In this document: in pieces, positions 1 through 50,859 of the stretch | Numbering within the stretch: position 1 is the stretch's first letter | Layout: every line of letters begins with the position of its first letter | Assembly (NCBI GenBank): GCA_002269645.1 | Contig: NIVC01000048.1 | Span: forward strand, 207,491 to 271,490 | DNA: 64,000 nt | Direction of reading: 5' to 3' | Source: Macrostomum lignano | Taxonomy: Eukaryota | Notes under the pieces: generated by a model | What the model saw: only the letters and a program-made list of their open reading frames with translations | Database searches by the model: none | Told to the model about the DNA's origin: nothing | Program-made: the position numbers and the translations under genes

Positions 1-1032
1 CCCTCTAAACTTTTACTAAGGCAAAATAATCGCAGTTTGAAGTTTTGTTTTATTCAAAGAATCCATTTTAAGATCAGTTCATTGGTCAAAATAAAAATTC
101 TCGTCGAACTTACCTGTTGCACAAAAGTGCAGTGCTTCTACTCGTACAAGTTCAATATAGTTTTAAACGAGGTAATTTGACGTCTTTAGGTGGACTTGGC
201 TAACTCAGCCCAATATGTTACAGCGTCTAAAATACAGTAGCTGTCGACTTCAGCGCGCAGGGACAATAGAGAAAACTCTTGTTGCTAACAGCTGGATGAG
301 ACTATGAGAGGCGGTCAGCTTGCAATTGTTCTCCTCTTGCTATGCACAGAAACTCTTCCCCGTACCAGCCTATAGCGATGTAGCAGCATGGCCAGATGGC
401 GGTGAGGCAGTGAAACGGGAGAGACTGCATGCCCACTGCGTGTCAGGTGGTTTATGGTTAAAAAAATAGTATAAAGAAGCTGAATGGCAAGTTTTTCTTA
501 ACCCACAGCGCTACTGACGATACACAAAAAGACTCTTCTCTACCCTGACGCCGCTTGGGCGATGCGGTCAAGAGACGAAGAATGAACGCTTTCTAATGAT
601 TGAGTACGAAAATTTGCCCTGAGTTCTCACCACCGTACAGCACCTTTTTTGACTAATATTTGTAGAGTTCAAATTCAAACTTTTGTCTCCATCATCATGG
701 CCTGTTCGACAGAAGAATTTACTCAGCTTGTCCTTAACTTTAAAGTACGCCTCGAACTTCAGTACCCAGAAAAGTGGGCATAAATAGTTGATTCAAAAAA
801 ATCAACGGATCAAAAATCTTTTTTCATGTCAAATAGCCTAGTAAGTACTCGATACGGCAACTGAGAAGACATGCTGTCTTTTAACCTCTCAATATCTGCC
901 ACTACAGCCATCTAAGCAACATTGAAATATTTTGGAATTTTTCTATATTATACAGAAACTCCACTAAAACGTAGTCGCAATCGTTTTTATATTTTTTCTT
1001 TTACCGTAAAAATACAGGGCATCCTCTGATAT

Positions 1033-1300
1033 TTCTACTCACCAAAGTAGAGTAGTTCGCACGCGTCAGAAGTGGTTTAATTTGTGTCGCGGCATCAGCT
1101 AGATTGCAGTAGCTGCATGCAGCACAGCACAGCGCACTGTAAATAGCGGCTCTCACAGCCTGTGCAGCTGGTGGGCCGCAGCCTGGGGGATCTGGATTTG
1201 AGCCAAAAGCAATTCCTCAGCTTACCCTGTCGCAACAATTACTGGCCGATTTCCGGTCGGGAGCGGCAAATCCCCCAGGCTAACTCGATACCCATTTTTG
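1033..1300 (+). repeat. ~260-bp direct repeat (second copy 2223-2479) carrying ncRNA copy A and ~135 nt of upstream flank
   Basis: Direct sequence comparison. Similarity decays immediately after the T-run. Confidence 0.9.
1170..1299 (+). ncRNA. Putative Pol III structured ncRNA, copy A1 (~130 nt, Y/sbRNA-like topology, family unassigned)
   Basis: GTGGG(1171-75) pairs with CCCAT(1291-95) and is followed by a T-run. AGCCTGGGGGA(1180-90) is the perfect reverse complement of TCCCCCAGGCT(1271-81). The internal loop is CCGC/AACTCGATA. TAAATAG lies at 1140-46. Covariation with copies B and C. Confidence 0.6.
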
Positions 1301-1632
1301 CACTTAATTTATCAACAATTAGGAATTGCGAGTTACATTTGATGTACCTGTGTGTTGAACATTTTATCTTAAAGACTCTCCGCTCCAATTGCTTAATATT
1401 CAATAAATTCAATAACATAGACATGTACATTTATATCTCCAGCGGCACTGTACATGTATCATGTACAAATGATTTCAAGTTATCATTTACACTGTCCATG
1501 CATACTGATAATATGACCTGCCTTAATTCAATACAATACATTGTTTTTAGTTTGCATACCAGTATTTGTCAATTTTGCTATTGAAATGAGAATTTTGGCA
1601 TAAACTTCTACTGATTTCTTTGCCTATTTTCA

Positions 1633-1937
1633 GTAGTATGTTTGGTCCACTTTTGGAAATTTAATGATGAGAAATGCAGCCGGTTGCGCCAAGTCGCTCA
1701 GCTTCAACTCAAATAGCCGCATTGCCTGCCGCATCTGTCGGTGGGCCGCGGACCGGGGGATCTGGGCTTGAGCCAACAGCAACTCCTGATCAGTGCTTCT
1801 GGGACGGCTGGCCGATGCGGCTGGTCGGACCGGCGCGACTCCCTCGGTCCAACTCGATACCCACTTTTTGCTGCTTTTGTGCTGATCTGGTCAATGTTTG
1901 ATAGCCGGTGGGGCAGCTGCGGCCTCTGGGTTCAAAT
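1633..1937. repeat. ~300-bp inverted repeat (partner 2913-3229) carrying ncRNA copies B/C
   Basis: 1633-1937 is the reverse complement of 2913-3229 with scattered substitutions and small indels. Confidence 0.9.
1740..1869 (+). ncRNA. Putative Pol III structured ncRNA, copy B
   Basis: GTGGG(1741-45)/CCCAC(1860-64) followed by T5. GGACCGGGGGA(1750-60) pairs with TCCCTCGGTCC(1840-50). Same internal loop as A1. AAATAG at 1711-16 has the same 30-nt offset as in A1. Confidence 0.6.
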
Positions 1938-2349
1938 CGATGTTCTGCAGTCAGAATCAAACGCCATTACGTCATTACTGAACTCTCTGTGCATCGAACT
2001 GGTTTTAGGGCCGCCTTTTACAGGCTTGATTGGTTTCAGACACATGAGCAGAACCGCAAATCTCGATTTTTGACTGTTTTAGATGTGAAGTTTTAGCTTG
2101 TCAAATTTCGATGTTTGGGAATAATTCATAGCATTTTCTGACAAATACCATATGATGAATTACTGTATAGGTTTCTGTTTTTTCTCTTCTCAAAGTAAAA
2201 AATACATGCAGTATTATTATGCTTCTACTCACCACAGTAGAGTAGTTCGCACGCGTCAGAAGTGGTTCAATTTGTGTCGCGACATCAGTTGGATTGCAAC
2301 AGCCCAGCACAGCGCACTGTAAATAGCGGCTCTCACAGCCTGTGCAGCC

Positions 2350-2478
2350 GGTGGGCCGCAGCCTGGGGGATCTGGATTTGAGCCAAAAGCAATTCCTCAG
2401 CTTTCCCTGTCGCAACAAACTGGCCGATTTCCGGTCGGGAGCGGCAAATCCCTCAGGCTAACTCGATACCCACTTTTT
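2350..2478 (+). ncRNA. Putative Pol III structured ncRNA, copy A2
   Basis: Near-identical to A1. AGCCTGGGGGA(2360-70)/TCCCTCAGGCT(2449-59), CCCAC followed by T5 (2474-78), AAATAG at 2321-26. Confidence 0.6.
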
Positions 2479-2985
2479 GTCGTTAATTACGGTAGTGTAG
2501 GCATTTTTTATACTCGTAGAAATTAATAATACATGCGTTACTTTTACACTTTGCTATATAAACAGTATTCACATAAACTTCGTATCTTGATTAAGCAAAT
2601 GCAGAAATTTGGTATCTATTTGAGCTGTCTCGATTTCAAATTTCTCTACCGAGGTGAGTAGTAATATAATAATATTGCAAGCATTATCACTTTAAGAAGT
2701 GGAAAATGCAGAAACTTATGCGGTATAGTTAATCATACACAAACCTATGCGTAATAATTACTAGTATTATTCCCGAATATTAGGATTATCAAGCTGAAAC
2801 TGAATATGCATACATATATGCTGGAAAATTTTATCAAGTTCAAGAGTGACGTAGTTTCACTCATGTGCCCGAAACCTCGGCTCCCAAGCCTGATGCTGAG
2901 CGCAGAATGTGAGTTTGAACCCAGAAGCCGCAGCTGCCTCACTGGCTACCAAACATCGACCAGCTCGGCACAAAGTTGCAGCCGC

Positions 2986-3117
2986 AAAAAGTGGGTGTCG
3001 AGTTGGACCGAGGGAGTCGTGCCGGTGGTCGGATCAGCTAAATCGACCAGCCGTCCCAGAAGCACTATCAGGAGTTGCTGTTGGCTCAAGCCCAGATCCC
3101 CCGGTCCGCGGCCCACC
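2986..3117 (-). ncRNA. Putative Pol III structured ncRNA, copy C (inverted paralogue of B)
   Basis: Reverse complement reads GTGGG-CCGC-GGACCGGGGGA...TCCCTCGGTCC-AACTCGACA-CCCAC-TTTTT. AAATAG (rc at 3142-47) lies 31 nt upstream. Confidence 0.6.
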
Positions 3118-3747
3118 GACGATGCGGCAGGCAATGCGTGGCTATTTGAGTTGAAGCTATAGGGGCGACTTGGCGCAACCGGCTGCTTTTCTCATCAAGA
3201 AATCGCCAAAGTGCACCAACCATACTACTTACAGGAGGCAAGGGAAGCTTACTCGTTTCCTAGATGCATACTTTTAAATAAACTATTTGTTGCAAGTTTT
3301 CGGGGGTCATACGAAAATAATTTTCATTTGCTACTCATAGTAGTTGCTTTTAAAATATTAAAGCAGAGTCTTTAATTGTTTCTTGAATGTAAAAAGTTTT
3401 AGCTTTAAATTTTATAGAATACTTTTATTATTTTCATTAGATAACAATTGTATTAAAACATAATTTTGTTGAAACGTTCTTTGCGCGCGTGTTCAATTGT
3501 TCTTATTGCAAGAATCTGAAGGCATCGATGAACGAGCTGGGATTCATTTTCGGCTAATGACAGCTAATACTGACTAGTATTAATCCCACTAACATCATTC
3601 AATAAATAATAACATTTACAGAAATAAAATTCGAATAGTTTAATCCATTTATTACGCTTCTAAACAAACTTTTCATAGTTTTTTATAGACCTTTGCCCAG
3701 TTTGTTACTAGACTACAGAACTTAGAAGACTGATTAAGAACTAAACA

Positions 3748-6835: not shown

Positions 6836-8509
6836 ATGATGTCTGGATATCGACAGCGCTTGTTGGAGTCTTTTTTGGGCTGCTTATCGGAGACCACAGC
6901 CCACGGACTGGTGCGTCTCAGAGACAGCGGATCCGACGGCAGACGGCGACCTCTGCAAGTGAAGACTGTGTGGCTATTAGCCATTCTAGCCTCCTTGGCC
7001 TATTGTTCGGTGAAAGTGTATGAGTCTTACAAAACATTTACTAGCGGTGATGTGGCCACGGTTATTAAGGCGAATTCCGTTCCATTTGTGTTTCCCGATG
7101 TGTACCTGTGCCACGAGAGCGCCATATCCGGCAGCTATTCGGTCGCACTCAGCCATCGGGACAGCGAAGAGCTTAATCGCTACAGACGATTAGTAAACGA
7201 AACAGTAGCTGGATTCTCCGATGCAGAGACCCGACTGTACAACTATGCGATTCGATTAATCAACAGTTTGCCATATCAGTTTGTTTTCAATCGGTTAGGT
7301 CGTCAGCTGCAATCTGTACTTTATTACGACGTTGTTGGAGTTCAAACTTACACAGTGAATACTACTCATCTGAGCATATTTCACGATCCTGGTTGGTTTA
7401 ATTGCATCTTACTTAGTCTGCCTTACAAAGTTAGAAGATCCATGCAAGATTCCAACACGATGATCAGCTTGGTGCTCTATTCGGATCCGCCCATTCCGCC
7501 CCCGCTCGACAACTCAACTTATCAGGATATGCATCCGTACATTGATGGAGGCTACATCAATTTAAAGCCGTACGATTTGGACGCCTTTTATGGTCTAGAT
7601 GCGACACGATCAAGCGGATATCGGGTATTTTTAACCGACCAAGGCAGCTATCCAACTACATTCGACACCCAGCTGATTGTTGGTACTAGTCAGAAGCATC
7701 AGATAGTTGTCAAAATGCAGGATATTGGCTATGATGTGAAGGATTTTGCTGGTAAATGCGTCAGCGGCGACACCAATGAGGTCATCGGGGTGCTGAATCC
7801 CTACACAGGTGGCATGGACTCTTACCCGTACAATCGGGCAATGTGCTGGTACAAAGAAGCTGCTAGACTATCCCGCCTCTGGTATAACTGCTCCGTGTGG
7901 CGTTATCCCACAATGTGGTTAGATCGCGATTTGCCTTCCTGTTTTAACATGTCGTCAATAGACAATCCGGGCTTCTCTAACGTCCTTTTTGATGCCGAAC
8001 GAAATCAATTGTTATCGAAAGCTTGGCTGGCTTGTAAAAATGTCATCCCTTGCAGTAGTCGGGTGTACACTTATCAGTATTCGTCAAGTTTTTGGCCAAG
8101 TCAACGAACCTGGCAAAATTTTCGTCGCACCTATTCAGCTTATCGCGCAGATTTACCAGCGGGTGCTGTCCGGCACCCGGGTATCGATTATCTATTGAAC
8201 AATGCCACGGATGAGTTTGCAAAAGAATCACTTCTTGTATTGACTTTTTCCGCTGCTGAGGGTACCAGCCAGTCTTTGCAGTTGTCTCTGGCCTATGACT
8301 TCAACTCTCTTATCGCCGATGTTGGAGGCCTAATGGGTTTGTTTCTTGGCATGTCACTGCTGTCGCTGTTGGAACTTTTAGAGCTGCTGCACGATCTAAT
8401 ATGCTGCTTGTTTTGTTCCACTACTGATAGTCATGTTGAAGAAATTCAGATTGTTGAAGCTTCAGTTGCTGGTGCAGCTAGTGAATCGTCATCTTCCAGA
8501 AATACCTGA
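6836..8509 (+). CDS. DEG/ENaC (amiloride-sensitive sodium channel family) subunit, 557 aa, intronless
   Basis: N-terminal TTAHGL (HG) motif, TM1, post-M1 FPDVYLC, GYRVFL and TM2 LIADVGGLMGLFLGMSLLSLLE with a G-x-S filter. Confidence 0.92.
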   Translation: MMSGYRQRLLESFLGCLSETTAHGLVRLRDSGSDGRRRPLQVKTVWLLAILASLAYCSVKVYESYKTFTSGDVATVIKANSVPFVFPDVYLCHESAISGSYSVALSHRDSEELNRYRRLVNETVAGFSDAETRLYNYAIRLINSLPYQFVFNRLGRQLQSVLYYDVVGVQTYTVNTTHLSIFHDPGWFNCILLSLPYKVRRSMQDSNTMISLVLYSDPPIPPPLDNSTYQDMHPYIDGGYINLKPYDLDAFYGLDATRSSGYRVFLTDQGSYPTTFDTQLIVGTSQKHQIVVKMQDIGYDVKDFAGKCVSGDTNEVIGVLNPYTGGMDSYPYNRAMCWYKEAARLSRLWYNCSVWRYPTMWLDRDLPSCFNMSSIDNPGFSNVLFDAERNQLLSKAWLACKNVIPCSSRVYTYQYSSSFWPSQRTWQNFRRTYSAYRADLPAGAVRHPGIDYLLNNATDEFAKESLLVLTFSAAEGTSQSLQLSLAYDFNSLIADVGGLMGLFLGMSLLSLLELLELLHDLICCLFCSTTDSHVEEIQIVEASVAGAASESSSSRNT

Positions 8510-9209: not shown

Positions 9210-9494
<285 letters not shown>

Positions 9495-9867: not shown

Positions 9868-10086
9868 GAGTGGGGCACCTCATGCCCGCACTCATTCCTG
9901 GGCGCCTATCGTCTGGAGTTTGACCAATCGTGGACACCCGTAGAGAAATTGGCAGCCAAGGCCGCCTCGCAGAAGCTAGTCTCTGAAATGTTTGGCTCGC
10001 AGAGACTGGCGGCCATCGAGTCTGGAACCGCCGCTGCAACCTCTGCTGCTCCTTCGTTGGCGCAGAAACCGGAAACTGTTGATTGA
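9868..10086 (+). CDS. C1orf50: C1orf50/DUF2452 family protein, exon 4 (joined protein ~194 aa)
   Basis: CAG acceptor, EWGTSCPHSFLGAYRLEFDQSWTP motif and stop at 10084-86. The four exons sum to 585 nt in frame. Confidence 0.9.
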   Translation, partial: EWGTSCPHSFLGAYRLEFDQSWTPVEKLAAKAASQKLVSEMFGSQRLAAIESGTAAATSAAPSLAQKPETVD

Positions 10087-12297: not shown

Positions 12298-13520
12298 GGC
12301 GCTTGAGCCTTCAAGACTTTTTTCTTGCAATGCTTTTTCTTCCAAGTGTCGTGCTGTGTTAGCGTGTTGTTGCATTGAGTTGGCTGGCTGCTTCTAGAAG
12401 CAAAAGTGCTCTCGCTCAGCGCTGCTCTTTCCGCCCCTCATCCGACGACGACGGCTTTCTGCTGCGGCGACGCGTGGGTCGACGTCAACCGGAGAAGCGG
12501 CTCAGCGTGCTTGGCTACGCCGACGACCTCGCCCTGCTGTCCTTGACCGTCGAGGGCGCCCAACGGCAGCTGGACAGGCTGGTTGCCGTTGCGGCGAGCG
12601 TCGGCCTGGTGGTCAACACGGAGAAGACCGTTGTGCTCTGCGTGCCGGACGACATCGAGGCTGCAATATTCTGCGCTGAAGGGCAGGCGACCGAGCTCCC
12701 GCGATGTCAGCAGTTCGTCTACCTCGGCGGTCTGGTTCCAGACGCTCGCGAGGACCTGCGACGCCGCCGCGGGCTTGCCTGGGCTGCCTTTCGTTCTGTG
12801 AGGGCAGTCCTGCAGTCCGAGGCCCTACCGGACCGCCAGAGGGCGGCGCTGTTCCAGGCGGTAATCGAGACCGTCCTGCTGTACAACGCCGAGACCTGGA
12901 CGCTGACGGACTCACTCGAACAGCAAGTCGATGCGGCGCACGCTGGCCTGCTGCGCGCCGCCTTCAACATCGGCGTCGAGCGAGTCAACAACGCGGCACT
13001 CTATCGCCGCGCTGGCCTGCCACGTCCAAGCGATCTACTGCGCCGTCGGCGACTCCAGCTCGCAGGCCATCTCATCCGCGCCGAGTCGTACTGCCCACAG
13101 CCGGTGCAGGAGGTGCTGCTCACGCTGCAGGCACCCTACCGGTGAGGTCAAGCGCGAACTCGGCGTTACGTCGACTGTCTGCTGGCTGACGCCGGCGCCC
13201 CGGACACTGCCGGTGGCGCGGCCTTTTTGTTCGCGCCCAAGCCATGAAGCGCGCCCTGTGACGCTGATTTTTACCATCCTGACAGCGTATTTTGTTGTTG
13301 TTGTTGTTGTTGCCCCTCTTAATTGTAGTCCAAGTTGCGTGACAAGTGCTGGAACCTCTTGGAGGAATTGGGAGCCTGCGCAATGTGGCGACTAGAGAGT
13401 AAGGTGGAGAGCCAGATGGAAACCTGTGTGTTTTCTTGTTAAGTACGGCTAAAAACTTTCCACTTGAGGCATGTTTTCTGTCCTATACAGTTTCCCTCTC
13501 TGCATCTGCCTCTAATGTCT
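12298..13520 (+). repeat. Unclassified interspersed repeat, copy interrupted by a LINE
   Basis: 12298-12439 and 13312-13520 align to 22590-23060. Confidence 0.75.
12440..13311 (+). mobile_element. 5'-truncated non-LTR retrotransposon (RTE-like clade), RT C-terminal part
   Basis: YADD catalytic motif, VNTEKT, FVYLG and ETVLLYNAETWTLT. A TGA at 13143-45 is probably premature. (TTG)n tail at 13292-13311 and TSD GCCCCTC at 12433-39 and 13312-18. Confidence 0.9.
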
Positions 13521-49761: not shown

Positions 49762-50859
49762 ATGTCCCCAGCATCGGCAGCAGGCGACCCGAGTTCCGGG
49801 GCGACCGCAGCTTCGGCACTCGCCTTGTTCCTCGTCGGCCGCATGCTGCTGCAGATGTTCGTCGCCTCACGCCGCAGCCGCAACCGTCGCCGTGCTGGCA
49901 CCGTGTCCGCCGTGCTGTTGTACCCGGTGAAGTCCTGTCTGCCGGTCCATGTGCCCAGCGCTCGCGTTACCGAGTCCGGCCTGGTCAGTCCCGACGGCGT
50001 TCTCGATAGGAGCTTTGCCGTTGTGAGCGTCACTAACAGGAAGCTCCTGGCGTTGAAGGCCTGTCCGAGGCTGTCGCTGATTCAGCCGGTGCTGGATCGG
50101 TCGAGTCCCACTGGAATTCGCCTGAGCCTGTCCGAGTCTGCAGACGCTGAGAAGTTGAACGTTTCCAACTCTGTGACAGTGCGCATCGGAGCCAAAGACT
50201 CGCGCACCTCTGGCGTGGAGAAATTCGACATGTTCGGCGAAATGGCCTACGGGAAGGTGTGCGACAAGGACACGAACTCCTGGCTGCGGGCAGTCTGTGG
50301 TAGAAACGACGCCATACTGGTGTACTGCCACCAGGAGCTTCGAACGACACTGACCGAACTGCGCGAATGCCAACGGCTTGGCATCGCGTCGAAGACGTTC
50401 GACGGCTGCGACATGCCGTCAAGCGGGGACAGCCGGATTGCCTACGCCAACACCGCACCGCTGCTGTTGGCAACAGAGCCGGCGCTGACTGCCCTGAATC
50501 AGCGTCTCGCCGACAAAGGTTGTCCACCTGTTGGTCACTGCAACTTCCGAGCCAACCTGGTCATCGACGGACCCATCCAGGACCGCGAGGAGGAAGCCTG
50601 GTCCTTCGTCTTCTTCCCGTCGAGCGGCTGCACTCTGGCCGTGCTGACCCCGTGCACCCGGTGCGGTATCACCACCGTGGACTACGCCAGTCCGGGCGAC
50701 GAGCGTCGACAGCTGCGCACCGACGGCGAGCCGCTGAAGACACTAGCCGAGTATCGCAAGGACGGCGCGTTCAAGAAGTTCAGCCCGGTGTTTGGCGTCA
50801 ACGGTTTCGTTGAGCTGCCAGGAGATGTGGCTGTTGGCGACGAGGTGTTGGTAATTTAG
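49762..50859 (+). CDS. MTARC: MOSC-domain protein, mitochondrial amidoxime-reducing component (mARC)-like, ~365 aa, intronless
   Basis: N-terminal hydrophobic anchor followed by a basic stretch, MOSC_N YPVKSC and DRSFAVV, FRANLVIDG, PCTRCGITTVD containing the Moco-ligating Cys, and FGVN. The first ATG is at 49762. Confidence 0.9.
   Translation: MSPASAAGDPSSGATAASALALFLVGRMLLQMFVASRRSRNRRRAGTVSAVLLYPVKSCLPVHVPSARVTESGLVSPDGVLDRSFAVVSVTNRKLLALKACPRLSLIQPVLDRSSPTGIRLSLSESADAEKLNVSNSVTVRIGAKDSRTSGVEKFDMFGEMAYGKVCDKDTNSWLRAVCGRNDAILVYCHQELRTTLTELRECQRLGIASKTFDGCDMPSSGDSRIAYANTAPLLLATEPALTALNQRLADKGCPPVGHCNFRANLVIDGPIQDREEEAWSFVFFPSSGCTLAVLTPCTRCGITTVDYASPGDERRQLRTDGEPLKTLAEYRKDGAFKKFSPVFGVNGFVELPGDVAVGDEVLVI

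Follow-up and report, generated by a model that had tools for sequence, protein, structure and literature searches.

A clustered family of four paralogous genes for a predicted Pol III-type structured RNA in Macrostomum lignano

Four gene copies of two types and their flanking signals

A 64-kb window of contig NIVC01000048.1 (assembly GCA_002269645.1, about 207,491-271,490 of the contig) from the flatworm Macrostomum lignano carries, near its start, four copies of an element of 129-132 nt (Table 1), which are interpreted here as candidate genes for a structured RNA made by RNA polymerase III (Pol III). Positions are those of the window, of which the region 900-3500 was inspected directly. The copies were found where a preliminary description of this DNA had placed them. 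In addition to inspection, a degenerate 26-nt pattern of the 5' end matches exactly these four sites (0 matches in 100 shuffles). The sites are also recovered by a covariance model (R1), which was derived from the copies themselves, when the whole window is scanned on both strands with filters off. In that scan, which the preliminary description had proposed, the copies score 138-151 bits and the next best match reaches 9 bits. As there are exactly four matches, the element forms a tight cluster and not a dispersed repeat, at least within the window.

Table 1. Coordinates of the RNA gene copies, their duplication units and their putative upstream signals
Feature	Position	Strand	Details
Copy A1	1170..1299	+	RNA body 1170-1294, T5 terminator 1295-1299
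Copy A1, stems			P1, nt 1-6/122-127; P2, nt 8-9/117-118; P3, nt 11-22/101-112
Copy A1, central region			Conserved 5' strand, nt 22-50 (1191-1219); 3' stem-loop domain, nt 59-99 (1228-1268)
Copy B1	1740..1869	+	RNA body, then T5 at 1865-1869; fold as in A1; outer five P3 pairs GGACC/GGUCC, changed relative to A1
Copy A2	2350..2478	+	RNA body, then T5 at 2474-2478; 98.4% identity with A1 over aligned bases
Copy B2	2986..3117	-	RNA body, then T5 at 2986-2990; 93.8% identity with B1
Duplication unit A	986..1309	+	Partner 2172-2488; ~185 bp upstream plus gene; 86% over 329 columns (BLAST)
Duplication unit B	1620..1959	+	Partner 2891-3241, inverted; ~120 bp upstream, gene, ~90 bp downstream; 85% over 354 columns (BLAST)
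TATA-like AAATAGC, A1	1141..1147	+	-29..-23
TATA-like AAATAGC, B1	1711..1717	+	-29..-23
TATA-like AAATAGC, A2	2321..2327	+	-29..-23
TATA-like AAATAGC, B2	3141..3147	-	-30..-24
Candidate proximal element GGTTGC, B1	1682..1687	+	-58..-53; inferred only
Candidate proximal element GATTGC, A2	2292-2297	+	-58
Candidate proximal element GATTGC, A1	1102-1107	+	-68
Candidate proximal element GGTTGC, B2	3175-3180	-	-63

The copies fall into two types, A (at 1170 and 2350) and B (at 1740 and, inverted, at 3117). An earlier division into A and B/C types thus reflected a real split between A and B, but only these two types are present. According to BLAST of the region against the window, each type was duplicated along with its flanks. 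Between the types, in contrast, BLAST similarity is found only for 1739-1870 versus 2349-2479, which corresponds to the RNA body (74%), and beyond the body the two types have only the heptamer AAATAGC upstream in common. The preliminary description had the similarity between A and B begin at GTGGG and stop at the T-run, and both limits were confirmed, with the upstream box as an addition. Within type B, the differences between B1 and B2 sit mostly in a 3' hairpin.

AAATAGC is TATA-like and is the only upstream block that is invariant in all four copies, at about -30 when +1 is set at the first G of GGTGGG. This G is the exact start of the similarity between types. At the other end, the terminal T5 is the only run of at least four T in each body, and the similarity between types stops there. 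The TATA-like box near -30, the start on a purine and the lone T-run terminator are what a Pol III unit of the gene-external, type-3-like kind would show, and on these signals the copies are probably transcribed by Pol III.

Two further sequences in the flanks are recorded here. Both A units have in common a distal upstream segment (CTACTCACC...GTAGAG), at 2151-2242(+) and at ~986-1075(+), and a third, inverted copy is present at 2644-2737(-), with 76% identity over 95 nt. The third copy is without an RNA gene behind it and resembles a piece of a repeat or the remnant of a promoter standing alone. Additionally, the downstream flank common to B1 and B2 contains, at 1928-1940(+) and ~2913-2922(-), the sequence GGGTTCAAA(TCGA), which resembles a tRNA T-arm or box B. 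It is preceded by GGTGGGGCAGCTGCGGCC, a faint echo of the RNA's own 5' end. At this site no tRNA was called by ARAGORN and R1 gave no score.

RNA fold, covariation and conservation

When the four copies were folded independently, the same minimum free energy (MFE) architecture was obtained for each, with z-scores of -2.2 to -3.1 relative to dinucleotide shuffles. After a 6-bp terminal stem, P1 (GGUGGG/CCCAC(U)), come an unpaired C7 that faces AUA, a 2-bp CG/CG mini-helix, P2, and C10 facing AACU. Beyond these lies a 12-bp stem, P3, which carries a large central region, and the RNA ends in a U tail (U5). The fold agrees with the terminal stem, internal loop, stem and U tail that had been claimed previously. 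The internal loop (CCGC / AACUCGA(U/C)A) is invariant and asymmetric and is present as described, but it is not fully open, because P2 can form inside it.

All 19 pairs of P1-P3 are standard in all four copies, so that 76 of 76 cells of the alignment are paired. As a control, the 3' partner was slid by 1-3 columns, and only 34-58% of cells were then paired, with no double changes. P3 reads AGCCUGGGGGAU in type A and GGACCGGGGGAU in type B, and the loop that follows begins with AUCUGG. In three P3 pairs both partners differ between the types (A-U/G-C, C-G/A-U and U-A/C-G), and these are the double substitutions that the preliminary description had listed; they are real on the alignment. It had also noted a single G-C to G.U change tolerated in the stem. 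Such a change is indeed tolerated, but there are two of them and not one. Since only two types exist, the covariation comes from essentially one comparison, that of A with B.

Two parts can be distinguished in the central region. On its 5' side lies a conserved strand of 29 nt (AUCUGGRYUUGAGCCAAMAGCAAYUCCU...), and on its 3' side a domain that forms a stem-loop in every copy, with the closing helix at the same place. This closing helix is GUCGC/GCGGC in type A, GUGCU/GGCGC in B1 and GUGCU/GGCAC in B2 (U.G to U-A), which amounts to two further double and two one-sided changes with pairing kept. A long-range helix proposed by RNAalifold (UUGAGCCA/UGGCCGA) was set aside in favour of the local 3' stem-loop, which forms in all four copies and covaries, although four sequences cannot decide between the two.

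Conservation differs between the body and its flanks, and also along the body. In the A pair, 2 of 128 body positions differ (1.6%), compared with 18 of 172 flank positions (10.5%; p = 0.0018). In the B pair, the corresponding values are 8/129 (6.2%) and 31/226 (range 10-18%; p = 0.034). When both types are pooled, the difference in divergence between body and flanks has p = 1e-4. Between the types, identity amounts to 18/21 in the 5' stems, 24/29 in the 5' central strand and 22/44 in the 3' domain, which has 13 gap columns in addition. One frame runs without a stop through both A1 and B1, but it is shifted by a 2-nt indel in A2 and by a 1-nt indel in B2. Indels disrupt every frame, and thus no coding frame is conserved; the previous statement that no frame is preserved is correct across the four copies, although not for A1 and B1 taken together. 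Covariation, differential conservation and the lack of a conserved coding frame argue for selection on RNA structure. No antisense target of the conserved strand was found in the window.

Database searches and neighbouring features

The RNA family is absent from Rfam 15. No match was obtained for the 64 kb at the gathering score, and at E<=10 the 2.3-kb cluster and single 141-nt copies returned only unrelated noise and no family. These searches included the families Y_RNA, sbRNA, Vault and 7SK, which had been proposed for a comparison with cmscan; absence from Rfam was established, whereas none of the named families gained support. ARAGORN found no tRNA or tmRNA in the window. Additionally, no description of the family was found in the literature that could be searched on M. 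lignano and on flatworm small RNAs.

The remainder of the window encodes metazoan proteins, namely an ASC channel, LRR, MOSC and WSC proteins and a fragment of a reverse transcriptase (RT) of a long interspersed nuclear element (LINE). The MOSC protein (ATG at 49762) exactly matches a protein encoded on NIVC01000048.1, whereas the ASC, LRR and WSC open reading frames (ORFs) have no exact record as annotated products. Neither the ASC protein (at an overly strict threshold of 1e-20) nor the MOSC protein found eukaryotic relatives in a word-indexed database. The ASC/DEG/ENaC ORF at 6836-8509(+) is intact and intron-less and encodes 557 aa (Pfam E = 8.6e-39). Among its ten best relatives in a full HMMER scan, 9 are named M. 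lignano paralogues and the tenth is a Logan sequence, with identities of 24-33%.

A DUF2452 (C1orf50-like) gene follows in two exons, 9244-9462 and 9868-10083(+), with a Pfam E-value of 2.5e-50. An in-frame ATG is missing from its exon 1, and the profile is matched from position 40 onwards; therefore, the N-terminus lies in an upstream exon or depends on the AUG-ending M. lignano spliced leader. The LINE-type RT fragment at 12375-13145(+) is GC-rich (52%) and matches RVT_1 weakly, short of the Pfam cut-off, and several long ORFs overlap on both strands of this region. Very dense and long micro- and minisatellite arrays occupy 16000-48800, with repetitive ORFs on both strands and strong local GC and AT skews. 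Two LRR ORFs of 420 aa, at 27965-29227(-) and 31506-32768(-), encode identical proteins 3.5 kb apart, with a long microsatellite of tetranucleotide type after each (29839-30933 and 33380-35647, SIYLSIYL... in the ORF list). Either the LRR pair arose very recently by tandem duplication, or the sequence was duplicated in the assembly.

Interpretation and comparison with known small RNAs

Overall, the locus is read as four paralogous genes, two of type A and two of type B, for a non-coding, Pol III-type RNA of ~125 nt that resembles a scaffold of a ribonucleoprotein (RNP) and falls in no named family; a probability of roughly 0.6 is assigned to this reading as a whole. That the copies form a real and functional family of non-coding RNA genes is very probable in itself, given the compensatory changes and the stronger conservation of the bodies. 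The preliminary description had proposed a functional Pol III RNA family, possibly of the Y RNA or stem-bulge RNA (sbRNA) kind. Its functional part is supported by the sequence (a box at fixed distance, a single T5, compensatory changes and stronger conservation of the bodies than of the flanks), but the Y/sbRNA label is not.

According to the model proposed here, Pol III would initiate at the first G of GGUGGG from the upstream TATA-like promoter and terminate at the sole T5, and La-type proteins would then bind the U tail. The paired 5' and 3' ends may serve as a stabilising or export mini-helix, as has been described for the paired ends of Y RNAs (PMC4726728). Protein or RNA would bind specifically at the invariant internal loop (CCGC / AACUCGAUA) and at the conserved 5' strand, while the outer part of P3 and the 3' hairpin may be needed as structure only. 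That the RNA acts as the scaffold of a stable small RNP, in the manner of Y or vault RNAs, is conceivable, at somewhat less than even odds. Still more tentatively, the RNA could represent an undescribed class of Pol III small RNAs of macrostomid flatworms, distinct from Y, vault and 7SK RNAs, in which the internal loop would dock a dedicated protein and the exposed 5' strand of ~29 nt would act as a binding or guide segment. More narrowly, the RNA would be the long-missing platyhelminth partner of Ro60 with a rearranged binding helix, but this version appears unlikely.

Several points weigh against this interpretation. The four paralogues belong to two lineages, and thus the covariation reflects few independent events, and the greater likeness of the bodies than of their flanks could also stem from gene conversion among neighbours. 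The 3' hairpin of B2 is heavily altered, and B2 may be decaying. With regard to the promoter, the candidate proximal element G(A/G)TTGC lies at inconstant spacing (-53 to -68), and the distal block of the A units stands alone and inverted at 2644-2737, and thus may be a repeat and not part of a promoter. Pattern scans of metagenome, GTDB and viral collections revealed no orthologue and chance matches only: 3 in metagenome contigs (chance), 2 in GTDB, in GC-rich metagenome-assembled genomes, and 0 in viral contigs. When R1 was run on the pattern-match loci, three of them (L001-L003) gave weak partial matches at or near the pattern sites (best 19.3 bits, model positions 17-108, E = 0.0037), which are read as chance, and L004 and L005 gave nothing. 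Finally, a concatenated six-frame translation of the four copies, searched against a protein database to catch spurious ORFs over homologous RNA genes, had no match.

If the copies were non-functional local duplicates of a repeat, short interspersed nuclear element (SINE) or pseudogene, then gene conversion and a few chance compensatory events would have to account for their regularities. The genome is indeed rich in repeats and duplications, there are four sequences only, in two lineages and with flanks duplicated along with the bodies, and the B2 3' hairpin is degraded relative to that of B1. However, the six P3 differences between A and B are pairwise compensatory with no pair broken, and a second helix covaries too. 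The similarity between types ends exactly at the transcript ends, and yet AAATAGC recurs at the same distance. Moreover, the four copies lie within 2 kb, each ending in T5, and no further ones are present in the 64 kb. Box A and box B, a poly-A or simple-repeat tail and tRNA similarity, as found in SINEs, are absent from the copies. The explanation is thus rather unlikely, and a SINE origin, which had been left open, is unlikely within this window, where only four clustered copies occur, each with its own upstream box. Similarly, it may be asked whether the copies are Pol II genes for a small nuclear RNA or spliced-leader RNA, with the U run as Sm site. M. lignano performs spliced-leader trans-splicing, its spliced-leader RNA genes are short (109 bp) and multicopy, and their 35-nt leader sequence is succeeded by the donor GTAAG and by an Sm site (PMC8629364); the 3' end of A1 reads AUUUUUG. 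In contrast, three of the four copies read ACUUUUUG and not RAUnGR, the published 35-nt leader is absent from the window at <=3 mismatches, no splice donor is conserved, and conservation between A and B stops at the U run with no 3' hairpin beyond. As the TATA-like box at -30 also favours Pol III, this possibility is extremely remote. A shortened 7SK-like RNA, with the HEXIM-binding 5' hairpin fused to a U tail, would agree with the type-3-like promoter, the U tail and the GGGGGAUCUGG conserved in all copies, which resembles the GAUCUGG of 7SK and sits atop a long G-C-rich stem. Furthermore, a tentative schistosome 7SK with a large deletion has been reported (PMC2770079), and in B1 a second GAUC (nt 48-51; 1787-1790) could pair with the conserved one (nt 20-23; 1759-1762) across a U.U mismatch, recalling the HEXIM site. 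The hallmarks of 7SK are SL1 with paired GAUC-GAUC and a 3' hairpin, SL4, adjoining UUU-OH (PMC10083321). However, the second GAUC is CAGC in A1 and A2 and has lost its C in B2, and the U tail is not preceded by a 3' hairpin (SL4), the 3' end being paired with the 5' end instead. The copies are also far shorter than 7SK (~125 versus ~300-440 nt), and Rfam 7SK and Arthropod_7SK gave no match. A 7SK-like origin, suggested earlier, is therefore very improbable: conserved GAUC-GAUC pairing and a 3' hairpin are both lacking.

Vault RNAs (vtRNAs) and Y RNAs or sbRNAs resemble the copies in general layout. If the copies were divergent relatives of vtRNAs, they would share ancestry with the sequences reported as putative vtRNAs in Fasciola hepatica (Table S9 of PMC8824774). 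The length of the copies falls within 80-150 nt, and they combine a panhandle fold with a T-run terminator and a clustered arrangement. The putative Fasciola vtRNAs fold alike (a 6-bp P1 of GUCGGG/CCCGAU, then CC/CAAU as a loop, a P3 rich in G and a hairpin on the 3' side) and align with the copies over their whole length weakly, though better than expected by chance (z = 2.4 and 3.2, p = 0.013 and 0.003, relative to dinucleotide shuffles). In contrast, the best box A (6/9) and box B (6-7/9) of the copies are reached by 25-95% of shuffles, and the vtRNA hallmark GGTTACTTCG, next to box A, is absent. The promoter of the copies looks external, unlike the type 2 Pol III promoter with box A and box B of vtRNA genes (PMC7904556, PMC8824774). 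Rfam Vault had no match in the window, the cluster or single copies, and none of the four copies was reported by a covariance model of Fhe_vtRNA1, 2, 3 and 5 (R2) in a window scan with filters off, although this model is narrow (4 sequences, 90% alike). M. lignano vtRNAs have already been identified by Rfam (PMC8824774). Rfam detects those but not these copies, and thus the canonical vtRNA is probably another gene. A vault-like origin is accordingly quite unlikely, and the earlier suggestion of one was not upheld without box A/B and GGTTACTTCG. As a divergent Y RNA or sbRNA, the copies would encode a flatworm Ro60-binding RNA in which the terminal stem, an unpaired C and an opposite 3-nt bulge form the Ro60 site. 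Paired ends, a U tail, a lower stem, bulges, an upper stem, a large loop and clustered genes with their own Pol III-type promoters make a Y-like layout, and the ends resemble Y ends (UGGGCCGC versus UGGUCCGA, and ACUCGA versus ACUUGA, from hY primer sequences in PMC13501136). In vertebrates, the Ro60 site is a conserved helix of 7 bp with one bulged C and, in the other strand, a bulge of 3 nt (PMC4726728). The copies have a 6-bp helix, the unpaired C7 facing AUA and then 2 bp, but arrangement and sequence are unlike hY3, in which the C bulges from a continuous helix of 8 and 5 bp. In the copies, C and AUA face each other, and no Y-like register can be drawn. Moreover, Rfam Y_RNA and sbRNA had no match, even at E<=10 on 141 nt. 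Y RNAs and sbRNAs are known to carry GUG-CAC/UG-CA in the upper stem and UUAUC in the loop (PMC4450293), whereas in the copies the upper stem has UG-CA in type A only and CG-CG in type B, and UUAUC is absent. The 5' half of the loop is conserved in the copies and variable in Y RNAs. Membership of this family, which the preliminary description had considered possible, is thus improbable: there is no Rfam match, the upper-stem and UUAUC motifs are absent or not conserved, and the resemblance to the bulged-C helix is no more than loose.

Beyond vertebrates, insects and nematodes, knowledge of small Pol III RNAs is sparse. In a survey of schistosomes from 2009, Y and vault RNAs were expected but not found, and 7SK was tentative only (PMC2770079); later, putative vtRNAs were described in Fasciola and vtRNAs were detected by Rfam in M. 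lignano (PMC8824774). Support for the present family so far comes from one locus with four paralogues. If the partner of the RNA is Ro60, La or vault, then a gap in the evolution of these RNPs would be filled, and if the partner differs, then a new RNP would be defined. If the RNA is not expressed, the locus would show how far covariation among paralogues alone can mislead. M. lignano is a model for stem cells and regeneration that is transgenic and amenable to RNA interference. Therefore, a structured and selectively maintained RNA family would be directly testable in this animal.

The best reading is that of a Pol III small RNA with a stem-internal loop-stem structure for which membership of the Y/sbRNA, vault, 7SK or spliced-leader families cannot be demonstrated. 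In comparison to 7SK, it has no 3' hairpin for LARP7. It differs from Y RNAs and sbRNAs in its greater length (~125 nt), in its terminal helix of 6 bp (7-8 in Y RNAs) and in the opposed position of the C and the 3-nt bulge, which do not flank a conserved helix. With these same RNAs it shares a P1 that pairs both ends, a U5 tail and an upstream box belonging to each copy, AAATAGC at -29/-30. Similarly, a variable centre between conserved ends is a likeness to vault RNAs.

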